Assembly (NCBI GenBank): GCA_963924565.1
Contig: OZ004608.1
Coordinates: 17,298,001 to 17,362,000, forward strand
Length of the DNA stretch: 64,000 bases
Direction of reading: 5' to 3'
DNA from: Ascidiella aspersa
Taxonomy: Eukaryota
How positions within the stretch are numbered: position 1 is the stretch's first letter; each line of letters opens with the position of its first letter. The notes below the pieces were generated by a model. That model saw nothing but the letters and a program-made list of their open reading frames with translations. It searched no databases and was not told where the DNA came from. The position numbers were made by a program, and so were the translations under genes. Of the stretch, positions 39,401 to 47,592 are shown in pieces.

Positions 39401-42400
39401 CTTTACTGTAAATAAGTGTAGTGCAGAGAAATGCTTTTTCTTACTAATCACCGGCGTTTATGAGGGAAATTGTTATGAATTATTGAGCGCAAAAATGACG
39501 TCTTTCCGTTTGGCCGCTCTCTGGCCCATTGTTGCCATTATTAAGCGAGTCATGTGCAAACACAATACAAAATACGGTTGAGGTTTCACTCTTCCCTTCC
39601 CTGTTATTTTTGTTTTATATTATTCAGGTTTTAATGCTTAACAATATATGTGATCCGCGCCTATGTAACATTTAAAAATAATGTCCTATTTTTAGAATAA
39701 GAGCGAAATGCACTAATCAACTGAGGATAAGCGCACCAAAATAAAGCCACATTTGATTTTTACTGTTTTATCGAATCATTACATCCTTCAAATGATTGCT
39801 GCATGTTTTACCTATGGAGCAGCTTTAATTTGCTTTACATCTTTGCTGTTTATTCAACATAAAAGAGAGACTGAAATCTTACGTTAAGAATAAAAAAACA
39901 CGAGGATAACTTGACACGTCTAGACCATTCTATAAAATCTTAAAATTTCGACCGGATATTTCGGGTTGGGGCGATAGCCATAACTGGAGTGCGATTCGCG
40001 GTTAAGAATATTACCTGTTTGAATGCCAGTAGGGCTTCTGTTGTGCATTGTTTGTTGTGGAAGTTTATAATAAGCGTCACGTTTGTTTGTGGTGATGGCT
40101 GTAATCTTTCTACGTCGTCAAGTTTGAAACGGTAGCAAGTCGAATACCATCTTGCACTTACTAAGTCATTATTCCAACCTTTTCTGTCTATAATGTTATT
40201 TTGCGAAGAGCAAACGAAAGTAAATCTCCAAAAAGTAATGAACATGTGGTTTTAAAGATTATAGCTTTGTCGCAAAGGTTGTTTTTGTGATTTTTTAGGA
40301 CAACCCAAAATATTTTGCAATTCAGGCACTGACACTGTTTTAAATGATAAATACCGTTTGTGTAACTCACTGTAGCAGTTTCTGGTGATGCGCCAAACAA
40401 CCAAGCAAAGCGAAACTAAAAGACATACCATTTGACAAACGCCATTTTTTCTTTACAGAAGGCTCAAGCGGCTTTGCAAGCGATGCAGCAGGCGGATGGG
40501 GGTGGCCTAAATCACGTTCTGCGTATCGTGGTTGAGAACATGCTCTATCCCATCACCATCGACATTCTGCACACCATCTTCTCCAAATTTGGCGTCGTGC
40601 TCAAGATCATTACATTTAACAAGAACAGTTAAGTCATCCGTTGTCGTTATTTTGCTTTCATTTTTATTGCCTGTTTTTTGAGCTATATTGAGCCCAATAG
40701 CCAAATATGCGTAGAAATTAATTGCTTTAAAGGCACAGTTTTTCTTAACGTGGTGTTAACCATTTGTGCAGATGTTGCAAAATTTGCGTTTGAAAGGAAA
40801 AAAATTGAGTTTTTTTTTCCGAACAGTCAGTGGCTTTTAAACCGGTATTCGCCGACCCCTTGAGATCCGTGATAAAAGTGATTATATCAGCCAGATCACA
40901 TGTTTTGCATTGAATTTTGTTAATTCTAAATCTGTTGACTGTTTGCGTTCAGTTAGAAGTTTTTTAGACTGCTTATTTGAATGTTAAAAAAACGTTTTGT
41001 AGCCCGATTACTACTGGTTTACATTTTCAACCGAGTGTTTATGCGCTTATAGCCTTTGTTCAGTCCCGGGATGGACATCATTTTTGAAAGTGTTTAATGA
41101 TTTGTTGTCTTTCATCAACTGTGTTCCTGCCGTGAAAGCATTTTACATTTTTTTGCGAAATATCAATTAAATAAAATCACATATTCGATTTTTTTGGTTT
41201 ATTTAGGTTTATTTAGTTTTGTTTATATGCCTTGCAGAGGCTAACTATCAATTAATTTGAAAAAATTGTTTAGTAACGCGCAGCTCAAATTAAAAAAAAT
41301 TGGACATTATTTATTTTGCGAGGACAATTACTATTTAAATATTCGTACACAGTTATCCCCATGCAGCGTGTGCATTCTGAATTTTACGCATTTTATTTAG
41401 GCATAGCTTGACTAACAGAAACATTAGCCACTTTTTATCGCGTTCCTCTAAACAATGGAAAAACTTCATTGACGGGAAGCTGCTAATTTGACACTTATCC
41501 GGTGCTGACCAAACTATTATTTTCATGTCTTAAATATAAATCATAAACATGTGAAAAATTATATAATAAGTAATATTTTTAATTATAGTCATTAGCTGTA
41601 ACTGTTACTTATCTTTGAATCGACACCAACAAAAATAAAGATACACTAACATCTATTTCGAAGTGTTTTTTGGATTGTCATAACTTTGCTGTTTGAATTT
41701 TCAGACCAATTTCAAGCATTACTTCAGATGGGCGACAGCATCCAGTCACAAACAGCAAAGCTCGTAAGCTTGTACAACACTATACTAATAGACTATGTAT
41801 TGTATTAGGCATCTAAAATACGAATATGGAATATATAGCTTGTTTAAAATGCTTATGCAGTGGTTCTCAAGTTTTTTTTCATATGCCTCCCTTACACACT
41901 TAAACTTTGTTAATTGCTCCCCAGAATAAATTATTGAATTATTTCACCTTTACTTAGTTTTTTGCTTCTGTTTACCTTGTTTACAGAAAAATAAACCTAC
42001 AGTAAAATAGGCGACAAATATGCGCAAATACCCAACATAGTTATAAGCGAATGCACTTTTATATAGAGGCACAGAAGGTGCAAAAAATGAACGTTTTATC
42101 TATCCCTTTCTTATAATTTTGCGGTTGTATTTTCGTCCTGAAAAATGTCAAGCCCCGCTAAGCAGTGCTACACAATATTTTTTAATTGCCTAACACTATT
42201 AAGGTTTACATTTTTGGCGGCACACTTTTTTTGACAATTAGAAATATGATCACATATCTAAGGCAGGCCAGTACGATTTGAAGTTTTATGGATAGATGTG
42301 CTCAAGCACCCATCTTTTGACTTTTTTGATTCCCTTATTATAAATCTTGCGTTTTTTATGAGCCCTTGTAAAATGTAAAAAGCCTCACTTACTCAACCTT

Positions 42401-45400
42401 ACAAGGTTTTGTGGCACGTAGGTATTGGCCTAGCAATGGTCTATTTTAGACTACATGAATGGCTGTTACTATGGAGAAACAATAGATGATTATAGATCTA
42501 ACAGACTTTCTCCTGAAAATATTTTTTCTCCTCCCTGGAAGAAATTTCGTTGCAAAAATAAAAATTCCTGCCTCGGGGAGACAAGTTCGAGTAAAACCAA
42601 ATACAGTTATGTTGTAACCTGGCATTTTGACAGGTTAGCCAGGATAAAAGAAAGACTAGGTCACCACTATAATACAATATAATACAATTTGATGTACTTA
42701 TGGTTAAGCTGTTAAAAAACCAAAAAATAAACCAATTTGATATCAAAAATTTTTCTGTTTCAACGTGCATTCGCCCCATATAGTCCTCAGAAAGCATTCT
42801 TTTTCGAGGTAGTGTTTTTTTTTTCGTTTAGGATGAAACACAATTCAAACTAAATGAGCGAAACTGGCTAAGGCAGCCATTTTACACTCATCGAATCCTC
42901 TGCTAGTGTTCTGCCACATTTGCTGACACTTTACGTTTTTTTACATATTGAAACTTGAATAAACTTCCCATTACTGACGCTTGATTTTAGAATGTGTAGT
43001 ACAACAGCAAAGTATCAACAATTAACTGACGTTATTTGCAATCCAATGATTGGCGATTTGGTACTGCACATGTTCACCTTTTGATGGCAAAGTGTAACAA
43101 TTAATGATCTTGTTAATTAACTGGCCCGCAACCAAAATAAGCCTTTATGTGCGATTAATCGAACTGGGCAAATAGCATAGGTATTGTAGAATCATTTTTC
43201 GATGAATATAATAGTAATAAGCAAGCATCAACATCAATCAATACAGTTATTTGTTTAAATAACCGCCATAAACTTGCTCGGCTCACAGGGAACATTAAAA
43301 ACGGCTAATTCTAAACATTTACTGATGATAGTCGCTCGACGGACAGAACATCTACAACGCGTGCTGCACATTGCGGATCGAGTACAGTAAGCTGACTGCA
43401 CTGAACGTCAAGTACAACAACGAGAAGAGTAGAGATTACACCAGGAATGATCTGCCGTCCGGCGAAACTAGCAGTTTCGCAACCCCAAGCAATGCCTTAC
43501 ACAATGTGTTGGCAGGTTGGAAACGCTCAAGTGCATGCTTTGTGTTTATTACGCAGTAGATACAACAGTAGAACCAGCCGACGAATGTAGACTTGAGGCA
43601 GTGGGTAATTTGTTTTTGTAAAGAATGGTTTGATCCTTGAAATCCATTCAACTTATTCTCTGCGATGAAATGGCTGTTCGGCAAATTCAACTACATTTTA
43701 GCATTTTTTTAGGAGTAAAAACAAAATAGTCATTACGTTTTGCTAACATGAAATAGGGAAGATTTTGTGTTTTTCGGACATAAAATATTTTTCTCGTATC
43801 TCCTATTTATTAAATTTAAACATGTTTCTTTAAAGAACATTTTAAAATAATGAGAAACTTGTGCACCGAAGTGTTTCGACATTTTTCAACCTGTATAATT
43901 CTGTATAAAGTCCAACTGATTTTTTCCTCAAAAAGATATTAAGTTGTTTTTTTGTATAACAAACTTCAATGTAAATATAAATTCTAAATAACCCGGATAT
44001 ATTTAGTCTTATATTTTAGCTGATTGGGCGACTGATTTAGATCAGTTTGTCTGGCAAAACGGTATTACATAAATCACACAGAATCATTGCTTAGGGAAAC
44101 GGATACAACCGCCAGTACAATTAAACGTCGACTCTTTTTTTACCATGTAAAGCATTGTAATGTCCTTTCGCCTTAATCCCCGTACAGCTATGTCGCTGTC
44201 ATCCACTACACATCTGCTCGTTCAATTTAGTGCCGCAGCTGCTTTACGCTTGTTTTAAATACAGGAGCAAGCGGCTTTATGCCTCAACATTACACCACTC
44301 AGCAACTGGCCGCTGCAATTCAGCAAAATCACCTCGCTTCCATTGCATCAGCTTCAAGTTAGTCTTTATGCGCCTCTGTCATTTTGTTGTCTGCTTATGT
44401 GGAATATCACTGGTTGTTCGATAGAATAACCAGTCACTGCTTGCTTTGCTCTATCCTTGTGTTTCAGCTTCACACAAATTGCTAAGAAACAACCCTTTAT
44501 TTTTTAACTTTCGCAATTTAGAATGTATACCTTGACCTTTATTTAGCAGCTTAATTACTGTTCACCGAACATAGTATTCAATTTATTCCTTACATCTAGT
44601 CTATTCATGCGTGCGAACACAGACAAAAATGATTATATTGTTTCTACCAGGTGCCCTGCAAGGCGTGGCCACTACCATGTCCGGCCATTACTCTCCCCTG
44701 CCCACCATGACTATGGGCAACACGGCTGTGGCCGCTCAACTTGCCGCCATTGTCGGAGTCAACAACGCGGTCTTGCACGTATCCAACCTGAACGACGAGG
44801 TAAGGTGGAATCGTGTACTGTTGTAGTTGCTTGCAGTTGTAGCTGACTATACGCGCCTGTTATGACGTGTGTGTGATACAAACCGTTCTTGCTTTTCGCT
44901 GCCCCGGTGCTATCGCGGCCCGTTCTGTCTGCGTCTTAGAGCCTTGCGATGTTCTGCTGGCTTCTAGTCTAAATCTTTGATTTCTTCAATCGTTTTTGAT
45001 TAACTGGCGGTGTTGCGAAATACCGCGGTTGTGAAATGCGCTCAAATGCTGTTGCCCAAACACGCAAGGTCGGTGTTGCCACGTTTAGGATTGCTGATTT
45101 AACGTTTATGTTGTCAGGTCGGTTTTACAACCGTGTTTCCGCAAGTTTTCAAGTGTAATAATTGTCGCGCGTGTGTGTGTGCAAACCAGGCGTTTGTGCG
45201 TCTGTGGTCTGGCGTGCTTTCCCGTGTGTAGCGCTTGTACAAACGCGCAAGGCCGCCGCCATTTTCGGTTGATTAATGTGGATACACTATTTTGCCGTCG
45301 TTTTTCCGACATGGCGCTCCACTTCTCTAAAAAAAGTGACGTTTTTTCTTTTTTTTCTACATTTCCGTCACTGCCAACGACCACTCGACCTTCGACTACT

Positions 45401-47592
45401 GTGCCCTACTACTACTACCACCTTTGTCTCTGCTCGCTCTATGGATGATCGCGAACGTGGTGCTCTTCCTGTTTACCCCTCCCTTCCCCAACACTCACCA
45501 TTTCGCTCTGGTATTCTACCTTCCGTAACCTGAATTTCTTTTTTTTTTCTGAATAACAACTTTAATATAACCCCCGTTTCAAATATGTTTTTACCCAACT
45601 GCCCTACGATTTACCCACCCACCACGATTCGTAACTTTCCTTCGGGCTGCTGCCGTTTCTATGTGCTTCCTCCACACGCAAAGATGGTGACGCCACAAGT
45701 GCTCTTTGTACTGTTTGGTACGTTTCTGCCTTGTTTTTCAATTTTATCCTCACGGCCTTAACTTTACTGGTGTTCCTTTACGCGCTTTCTTTCTTGGTTC
45801 ACACATAACAGCATTTTTTTACTTTGTGTCCATTACCGATAGCTCAATCTTCAAAATTCACGTAGTTAAAATAAAGCCGAACTTATTTTTTTGAATTTTG
45901 GCACATGTATTATTAACGAGAATCAAACCGAACTGTTGGTGTGTCTTTGGCGATATATCTAGGACTGTTCAGTTTCCGTTTGTTAAGTTTTGTCCCAACA
46001 TTGTAATAACTCTCTATGAACTAGCCATACATCTTGGTTCATATGTTTACCCATCGTGTAAAGTACTTACTACTTAATAATATCGTTATGATATTGCGCC
46101 ACCAGGTGTTTACGGTGACGTCATCCGCGTTAAGATCCTCTTTCAGAAGCAAAACAGCGCCCTCGTGCAGATGAACGACTACACACAGGCTCAGCTCGGT
46201 AGGCCATAACACAGTCCTTAGTGTGTACAACTATGTCTGAACATAATGACATACTACTTAAAATTAGTTTTTGAACATTGACGCGGTTTACAGACAGTAA
46301 AACACTTTATTGTTTTTTCGGACGTAGCTGGAAAAACTCTAAAAAAGTTAGTTGTACGTATATATATAGTTTGTGTTTTAATGTGAATACATGTTGTGCG
46401 TGTTATTGCGATGGTCTTTTCCACAGTTTTTGCCTTAACCAATTTCGTTGCTTCTAGTAATCAAATATCTCCACGGTTTGAAGCTGTTTGGTCGCTCGAT
46501 GCAAATTGCCATGTCCAAGCACAGCCAGGTTCAGATGCCTAAGGAAGGACAGGAGATGTCCAAACTCACACAGGTAAGACCAGCTACTATTGAGGTGGCT
46601 TGGGGGTGATTTTCGATTTCCTTGTTTGACAAATAAAACTAAAATTTATTTAAACAAACCTTTATCAGATGCTATAGCATTGCATTGACTTGTGATAAAC
46701 ATAGAAAACAACCATAGTGTGATTCAGTTTACTAATTTCCGGACAAGGCAGTGAGTTATGAGAAATTGTATTGCCAATAAAATATTTTTTTACAGGATTA
46801 CACCAACTCCCCTCTCCACCGCTTCAAAAAGCCAGGTTCGAAGAACTTTCAGAATATATTTCCCCCTTCTGAAGTCCTACATCTCTCCAACATCCCGTGA
46901 GTCGCTTTTCTAGTTCATAAAAGAGTTTCAACAAACTCAATATTCGTGTCCATTGTATCCAATTTCCTATTTTCTTTGCTAGACCCGAAACCACAGAAGA
47001 GTTCTTAATGGATGCGTTCGGTCAAAACGCAACTGTGCAGGCATTCAAGTTCTTCGCGTAAGTTTCGCCACACTTTGTTTGCTTGACGTGTTTGGTTTCG
47101 CCTAAATACAGGGTACAATGCAAATGCCACACTTTGCAGAATAGTTCGCTCGGTTGGTGCATGTTTGATAAGCCTTTTTATGAGAGGTTTTTGAAATTTT
47201 AATTGATAACTGAGTACCTGTTAGGTAGACTTTAATGCCATAATCTACACTTTTTGAGTTGCGTGTTTCTAACATTTAAACTTGGGTTGTGAATAAACCT
47301 AGTAAATGCTTCGATTGTTTTTAAATTGCAGAAAAGACAGAAGAATGGCGCTCATTAAACTTTCCAGCATCGAAGACGCTGTGAAGTGTCTAGTGGTAAG
47401 TTTTGGTTTTAGTTCACAACAAATATTTTTAAGTGAGCCAATTTTTAGTTGCCGATGTAAGCTGGTCTATTTATCTGTCACTAAATTACCGTAGTATAGC
47501 AAAGGCATTTGTTTTTATTCCAGCTTCTTCACAATGCCAAGTTAAGTGACACCAACCACTTGAGGGTGTCCTTCTCCAAAGGCCACATTTGA
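30480..47592 (+). CDS. PTBP: Polypyrimidine tract-binding protein (PTBP1/2/3 homologue, 4 RRMs), 16 coding exons, ~534 aa
   Basis: Exons: 30480-30521, 34914-34973, 35769-35906, 38768-38926, 40459-40627, 41705-41763, 43332-43515, 44265-44357, 44651-44799, 45684-45717, 46106-46198, 46458-46573, 46796-46896, 46983-47057, 47332-47395, 47524-47592. Motifs: [116 protein letters not shown]. Confidence 0.96.
34342..34539 (+). CDS. PTBP: Candidate alternative first coding exon of PTBP (66 aa, Pro/Gln/Ala-rich N-terminus)
   Basis: ATG at 34342 opens a GC-rich, coding-like frame [17 protein letters not shown]...HTATK. It ends at AAG|GTGGGT (phase 0), in frame with exon 34914, and ends in TK like exon 30480-30521 (NGTK). 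Confidence 0.7.
45337..45681 (+). promoter_or_regulatory. AG-exclusion zone with candidate distant branch point and polypyrimidine tract upstream of the PTBP 34-nt exon
   Basis: No AG dinucleotide between 45337 and the 3' splice site at 45682-45683. TGAC (A45339) is followed directly by GTTTTTTCTTTTTTTTCTAC, and the zone is CU-rich. Confidence 0.8.
45684..45717 (+). CDS. PTBP: PTBP 34-nt cassette exon (equivalent of vertebrate PTBP1 exon 11 / PTBP2 exon 10, AS-NMD switch)
   Basis: AAG|ATGGTGACGCCACAAGTGCTCTTTGTACTGTTTG|GTACG is 34 nt and encodes [11 protein letters not shown](G); human reads RVTPQSLFILFG. It is required for frame; skipping gives TGA at 46172. Confidence 0.92.

Follow-up and report, generated by a model that had tools for sequence, protein, structure and literature searches.

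The window analysed here is a stretch of 64,000 nucleotides (nt) from the genome of the ascidian Ascidiella aspersa (GenBank assembly GCA_963924565.1, contig OZ004608.1, positions 17,298,001 to 17,362,000 of the forward strand), and the coordinates below are counted from its first nucleotide. It carries a PTB gene, in which a 34-nt exon, hereafter called the switch exon, is preceded by 345 nt without a single AG dinucleotide. The homologous exon 11 of human PTBP1 serves autoregulation by alternative splicing coupled to nonsense-mediated decay (NMD) (Wollerton 2004, as cited in PMC1431707 and PMC1940037). Our analysis indicates that the ascidian gene probably works in the same way, that is, by a distant branch site, PTB-driven skipping of the exon, NMD and negative feedback. 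This reading needs the fewest assumptions, and it is newly supported by controls within the gene, by a test of sub-zones of the AG-free stretch and by a transcript isoform of a cladoceran crustacean. Because the 345-nt zone stands at the same exon in an ascidian, and because a crustacean transcript skips the same 34 nt, the sequences suggest that the self-limiting PTB switch is older than the vertebrates and is not a vertebrate refinement.

The original prediction had described the AG-free stretch of 345 nt in front of the exon, and our recount confirmed it (Table 1). No other AG-free run on either strand of the window is as long, and the next ones measure 214 and 175 nt. We placed 14 acceptors of the gene; at the other 13, the AG-free zones are 17–72 nt long. 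As a control, 18 stretches of 10 kb were taken from nine chromosomes of the same genome, which makes 360 kb counting both strands (the assembly of 308.6 Mb has 75 contigs, and nine of them measure 26–41 Mb). This control contains 18,099 AG-free runs with a mean length of 17.8 nt and a maximum of 179 nt, and none of them reaches 200 nt. For a cassette of the PTBP1 exon 11 type, a zone of at least 150 nt is expected, and this one is longer. From the local composition, 8.1 AG dinucleotides are expected in the zone and none is observed, while GA, for which 8.1 are likewise expected, occurs 11 times. When the zone was shuffled by mononucleotides, 11 of 200,000 shuffles were without any AG. Its pyrimidine fraction (0.687) is the highest among the 345-nt segments on both strands of the window. 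The AG-free zone is far beyond chance. We also considered whether it could be something other than a splicing element. A repeat or transposon was rejected, as the zone is present in a single copy in the genome and contains no repeats. There was no match in Rfam, so that a known RNA family was rejected, and a stable structure was rejected because the predicted fold is not significant (z −1.27). A coding exon on either strand was rejected as well: the overlapping open reading frames (ORFs) of 41–92 aa look non-coding, as judged by inspection alone.

For the switch exon and for the flanking exon ends at 44799 and 46106, the coordinates predicted earlier proved to be correct on re-reading. The exon has canonical splice sites, with the acceptor AG at 45682–45683 and the donor GT at 45718–45719 (GTACGT). 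It is placed between the VSNL strand and the VYGDV motif of the third RNA-binding domain, RRM3. All PTB proteins retrieved have conserved the 12-residue segment of the exon, which aligns with (R/M)VTPxxLFxLFG. By position, the exon corresponds to exon 11 of vertebrate PTBP1 and exon 10 of PTBP2, and the reading frame of RRM3 needs it. The frameshift predicted for skipping was reproduced, since joining 44799 to 46106 gives a premature TGA at 46172. According to the position rule of NMD, a stop codon is recognised as premature when it lies more than 50–55 nt upstream of the last exon junction. In the RNA spliced in silico according to our exon model, the TGA lies 380 nt upstream of this junction; therefore, skipping of the exon fits the rule.

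It turned out that the same 34 nt can be skipped in a crustacean. Metagenome contigs were scanned with an alignment of invertebrate PTBs, and 80 loci were kept, almost all of them intron-less and transcript-like. In 79 of the 80 loci, the VSNL strand and VYGDV are 45–48 nt apart where both could be placed (a few gave no position for the strand motif). In the remaining locus, L078, only 14 nt separate the two motifs, which are not in the same frame. L078 is from the same gene as three other contigs (L010, L011 and L014), with 1–3 mismatches over 1.6–2.1 kb. These three contain 34 nt that are exactly what L078 lacks, namely MVTPDALFTLF and the first base of a Gly codon, and the ORF of L078 ends 8 codons past the junction. 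The full-length protein shares 90% identity with a protein of Daphnia sinensis, and crustacean and insect PTBs come next. Judging by these contigs, the cladoceran exon agrees with the ascidian one in size and boundaries, and some transcripts at least are spliced without it. Since L078 lacks exactly the homologous 34 nt, a protostome also has this exon as a separate unit that can be skipped, and this supports the view that the exon and its skipping are ancestral in bilaterians. Among the metagenome loci with introns (L045, L063 and L066), none has an intron at the 34-nt exon, and the vertebrate form of the 12-residue segment was found in none of the retrieved contigs. L014 also lacks a 90-nt linker segment that is present in L078 and L010, and there are differences of 3 nt and 6 nt near the 5′ end; they look like further alternative splicing of the same gene.

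We counted the PTB-type motifs UCUU, YUCUYY and YYUCUY around the switch exon. There are 8–10 of them per 400 nt on each side, against a window mean of 3.6 with a standard deviation (SD) of 3.0. In the 110-nt AG-free run that covers the donor side (45700–45809), UUUCU and CUUUCUUUCUU tracts are found. Thus, the CU-rich tracts that the original prediction placed on both sides are present, and the AG-free zone has the top pyrimidine fraction, but the enrichment in PTB motifs is modest. In the mechanism that we consider probable, the switch exon would be spliced from a far-upstream branch site, for which A45339 and the U-rich tract after it are the likeliest choice. As the spliceosome would accept whichever AG comes first after the branch site, selection would have kept all 345 nt clear of AG. 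The exon would be weak and repressible, since its branch site and tract are far away and embedded in pyrimidine-rich RNA. Abundant PTB, which may be the product of the window gene or of an intronless paralogue on chromosome 4, would bind the C/U tracts on both sides and cause skipping. The 44799–46106 junction would then shift the frame to the TGA at 46172, and the mRNA would be removed by NMD. The outcome would be a negative feedback on the PTB level.

The zone contains 12 UnAy motifs, and three of them stand out as branch-site candidates, at −345, −156 and −50 relative to the exon. The first of them, A45339, sits right at the zone's 5′ edge, 3 nt past the last upstream AG. The 25 nt after it are 88% pyrimidine and 72% U, which is the best tract among the 12 candidates, and a TGAC followed by a U-rich tract had been predicted here correctly. 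A perfect 7-bp inverted repeat (AGUGACG/CGUCACU, 45335–45372), whose stem also shows up in the predicted fold, would pair the −345 motif and leave the U-rich tract in a 24-nt loop; we do not rely on this stem, because by our estimate about one such repeat is expected in the zone by chance. The exon might instead be constitutive and use a conventional branch near −50 (UCGUAAC, A45634), and the AG-free zone would then be a by-product of an unusually pyrimidine-rich intron. The −50 candidate indeed has a 5/7 heptamer followed by a tract of 76% pyrimidine, the Phallusia linker query brought up no skip-type product in the protein collection, and ROD1 (PTBP3) uses a conventional branch point at −21 for the homologous exon 10, with no alternative splicing (PMC1940037). 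However, from −345 to −50 there is no AG where composition predicts 6.5 (P = 5e-4), and GA is not depleted. The acceptor region of the switch exon from −23 to −4 has a U content of 0.25, the lowest of the 14 acceptors, and it is the only acceptor of the gene with A at −3 (AAG). No acceptor of the gene is weaker than this one. A far-upstream branch is favoured because of this U-poor acceptor with A at −3 and because AG is also missing from the distal sub-zones, which a proximal branch would not protect. In human PTB, a similarly good candidate at −51 turned out to be irrelevant, as its mutation had no effect (PMC1431707). We therefore regard constitutive splicing as quite improbable, and the sequence makes it likely that a branch more than 100 nt upstream is used. 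It could also be a distant branch at −156 (CCGUAAC, with a U tract of 16 nt), and the upstream half of the zone would then be a chance extension. The U tract of this candidate is the second best of the 12, and the absence of AG from −345 to −156 (0 against 3.9 expected), taken alone, has a P of only 0.012. On the other hand, the −345 candidate has the stronger tract and follows almost directly on the last AG, and we prefer it because the published 5′-to-3′ logic favours the first good branch/tract pair past the last AG (PMC1431707). The −156 site thus seems unlikely, and A45339 itself has about an even chance of being the branch site.

It is conceivable, although in our opinion also unlikely, that the branch is distant and the exon skippable, but that the gene does not regulate itself. 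Skipping would then depend on other pyrimidine- or U-binding factors or on the intronless paralogue only, or it would be a tissue-specific shut-off. The paralogue is an intact, intronless PTB gene of 521 aa on chromosome 4 (G000:C4:12288255-12289820, minus strand, equal to L002:1075-2640:-). It holds the exon-included form (NLNDEVTTPQMLFMLFGVYGDV), and because it has no introns it is beyond control through the 34-nt exon. The PTB motif density, which is only moderate, also fits such a scheme, and vertebrate paralogues cross-regulate through the homologous exon, as PTBP1 acts on PTBP2 (PMC1940037). A role of the intronless paralogue as cross-regulator is possible. Nevertheless, the RNA-binding domains of the two ascidian paralogues are 60–97% identical per exon, so that the window protein should bind the same tracts, and autoregulation is documented for the vertebrate counterpart. 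Several observations weigh against autoregulation from a distant branch as a whole. The density of PTB motifs is only about 2 SD above the background, and several sites in the window are denser. The −156 and −50 candidates, among 12 UnAy motifs, are also respectable. The predicted RNA structure of the zone is unremarkable (z −1.27). None of the 3 proteins that the Phallusia linker-region query matched in the protein collection is a truncated product of the skip type. Finally, as the conventional branch of ROD1 shows, a gene of this family can lose the distant branch, so that this architecture is not a requirement.

Table 1. Features of the switch exon and its surroundings (positions in the window).
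Feature	Position	Strand	Details
Constitutive upstream exon, linker and RRM3 strand	44651–44799	+	Ends in phase 0; donor GTAAGG
Best distant branch-site candidate, AAGUGAC	45334–45340	+	Candidate branch A45339 (−345); 5/7 match to UACURAC
AG dinucleotide exclusion zone, 345 nt	45337–45681	+	69% pyrimidine; preceding AG at 45335–45336
U-rich polypyrimidine tract, 17 nt	45342–45358	+	Mostly U; adjoins the −345 candidate; UUCU/UCUU PTB-type motifs
Second branch-site candidate, CCGUAAC	45522–45550	+	A45528 (−156); 16-nt U tract at 45535–45550
Proximal branch-site candidate, UCGUAAC	45628–45635	+	A45634 (−50); followed by a G-interrupted C/U tract
Switch exon, 34 nt	45684–45717	+	11 residues and the first base of a Gly codon (RRM3)
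Donor GTACGT and pyrimidine-rich intron start	45718–45809	+	Within the 110-nt AG-free run 45700–45809
Exon downstream of the switch exon	46106–46198	+	Matches PTBP1/PTBP2 RRM3 structures
Premature TGA predicted on skipping	46172–46174	+	Frameshift after joining of 44799 to 46106

By its similarity to known proteins, the host gene is an ascidian orthologue of PTB (hnRNP I) and is closest to that of Phallusia mammillata. Its exons were searched singly, and the intronless paralogue was used as a full-length query. The exon downstream of the switch exon matches the RRM3 structures of PTBP1 and PTBP2 (1qm9, 2adc, 4cq1 and 2mju; E from 4e-8 to 1.4e-7), and the best named relatives found with the paralogue are PTB proteins of Ciona, Clavelina, Styela and Phallusia. 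Both results agree with the PTB identity given in the original prediction. The gene spans about 34.3–47.6 kb of the window on the plus strand and has at least 16 coding exons (exon-by-exon tblastn). Most of them are 80–100% identical to the P. mammillata PTB (P0007), and two are nearer 55–60%; the exon at 44651–44799 has 82% identity to residues 357–389. Between the exons at 43332 and 44651 we found a small linker exon (44265–44335) that the earlier description did not contain, with 60% identity to residues 315–339 of the same protein. The RRM2 exon ends in phase 1 at 40627, and its last codon, AAC, is completed by the exon at 41705. The donor at 40627/40628 is GTTAAG preceded by ACA, which is ordinary but weak-looking.

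The intronless paralogue looks like an old retrogene, judging by its structure and similarities. It is 73% identical to the Ciona protein named PTBP1 (P0003) and 72% identical to a Clavelina protein (P0004), closer than the relatives of the window gene. Because it is so close to the Ciona and Clavelina proteins, the duplication is probably old in ascidians. The metagenome contig Ga0210059_1019663 (L003:6690-8240; 9382 nt) contains an uninterrupted 83% match to residues 1–519 of the paralogue together with an upstream flank of 6.7 kb. This suggests that the paralogue is intronless in another ascidian as well. We also considered whether the Ciona savignyi protein H2Z4Y1 (P0027, 396 aa) could be a skipped isoform, and rejected this. 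In this protein the linker exon is joined straight to VYGDV and the whole start of RRM3 is missing, which is probably due to a gap in the gene model.

PTB exon 11 is a textbook case both of a self-limiting splicing repressor and of a distant branch point. Its architecture has so far been described for vertebrates (PMC1431707), and our literature search found no report of the cassette outside them, although the collection searched was limited and this is not proof of novelty. We tentatively suggest that the complete circuit, with the 34-nt RRM3 exon, the distant branch and AG exclusion zone and PTB-driven skipping to NMD, may be a bilaterian invention that predates the duplication into PTBP1, PTBP2 and PTBP3 and has been retained in ascidians and branchiopod crustaceans. 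The ancient intronless paralogue of ascidians would escape this circuit and may act upstream of it. If this is true, the arrangement of the ascidian paralogues would be an independent parallel to the vertebrate hierarchy from PTBP1 to PTBP2. The original prediction spoke of an invertebrate-like genome, which is an overstatement, since the host is a tunicate and ascidian tunicates are the sister group of vertebrates. The conservation is less surprising for this reason. Ascidian embryos accept electroporation and morpholinos, and an ascidian would be a simple system for studying why the exon needs a remote branch site.

The ascidian exon shares with human PTBP1 exon 11 the protein family, the position in RRM3, the length of 34 nt (PMC1940037) and the frameshift with a premature stop upon skipping. 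In both, a long AG exclusion zone has a branch-like motif ending in UGAC close to its 5′ edge, with a U-rich tract behind it, and the exon is flanked by pyrimidine tracts on either side. In human PTB the zone measures 381 nt, compared with 345 nt in the ascidian, and the branch point at −351, a UACUGAC followed by a U-rich tract, was verified by mutagenesis (Gooding et al. 2006, PMC1431707). In contrast to this perfect human heptamer, the ascidian candidate is AAGUGAC, and the ascidian switch is a prediction from DNA. For nPTB (PTBP2) exon 10, a zone of 438 nt and a predicted branch point at −389 were reported, and for exon 11 of Fugu PTB a zone of 590 nt and a predicted branch point at −566, which was called remarkable for a compact genome (PMC1431707). 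Skipping of nPTB exon 10 is driven by PTB and leads to NMD (Spellman et al. 2007, PMC1940037). This exon lies within an ultraconserved element. The original prediction held that exon size, phase and branch distance have all been conserved. Size and phase are supported by the cladoceran contig without exactly 34 nt, and for phase also by the protein alignments. The distance is not, because the published vertebrate values are 351, 389 and 566 nt; the closeness of 345 to the human 351 is thus most likely a coincidence.

The cladoceran (Daphnia-like) gene resembles the ascidian one in that the same 34-nt unit, when skipped, leads to a frameshift and a stop. It differs in being known from transcript contigs alone, and one skipped contig shows an isoform, not regulation or a branch site. 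Vertebrates have three intron-containing paralogues, whereas the ascidian has one intron-containing and one intronless gene. Among the homologous exons of the vertebrate family, the ascidian layout matches those of PTBP1 and PTBP2 and not that of ROD1. The zones and branch distances that share this layout range from 345 to 590 nt, and the compared sequences indicate that the conserved property is the distant arrangement and not its length.

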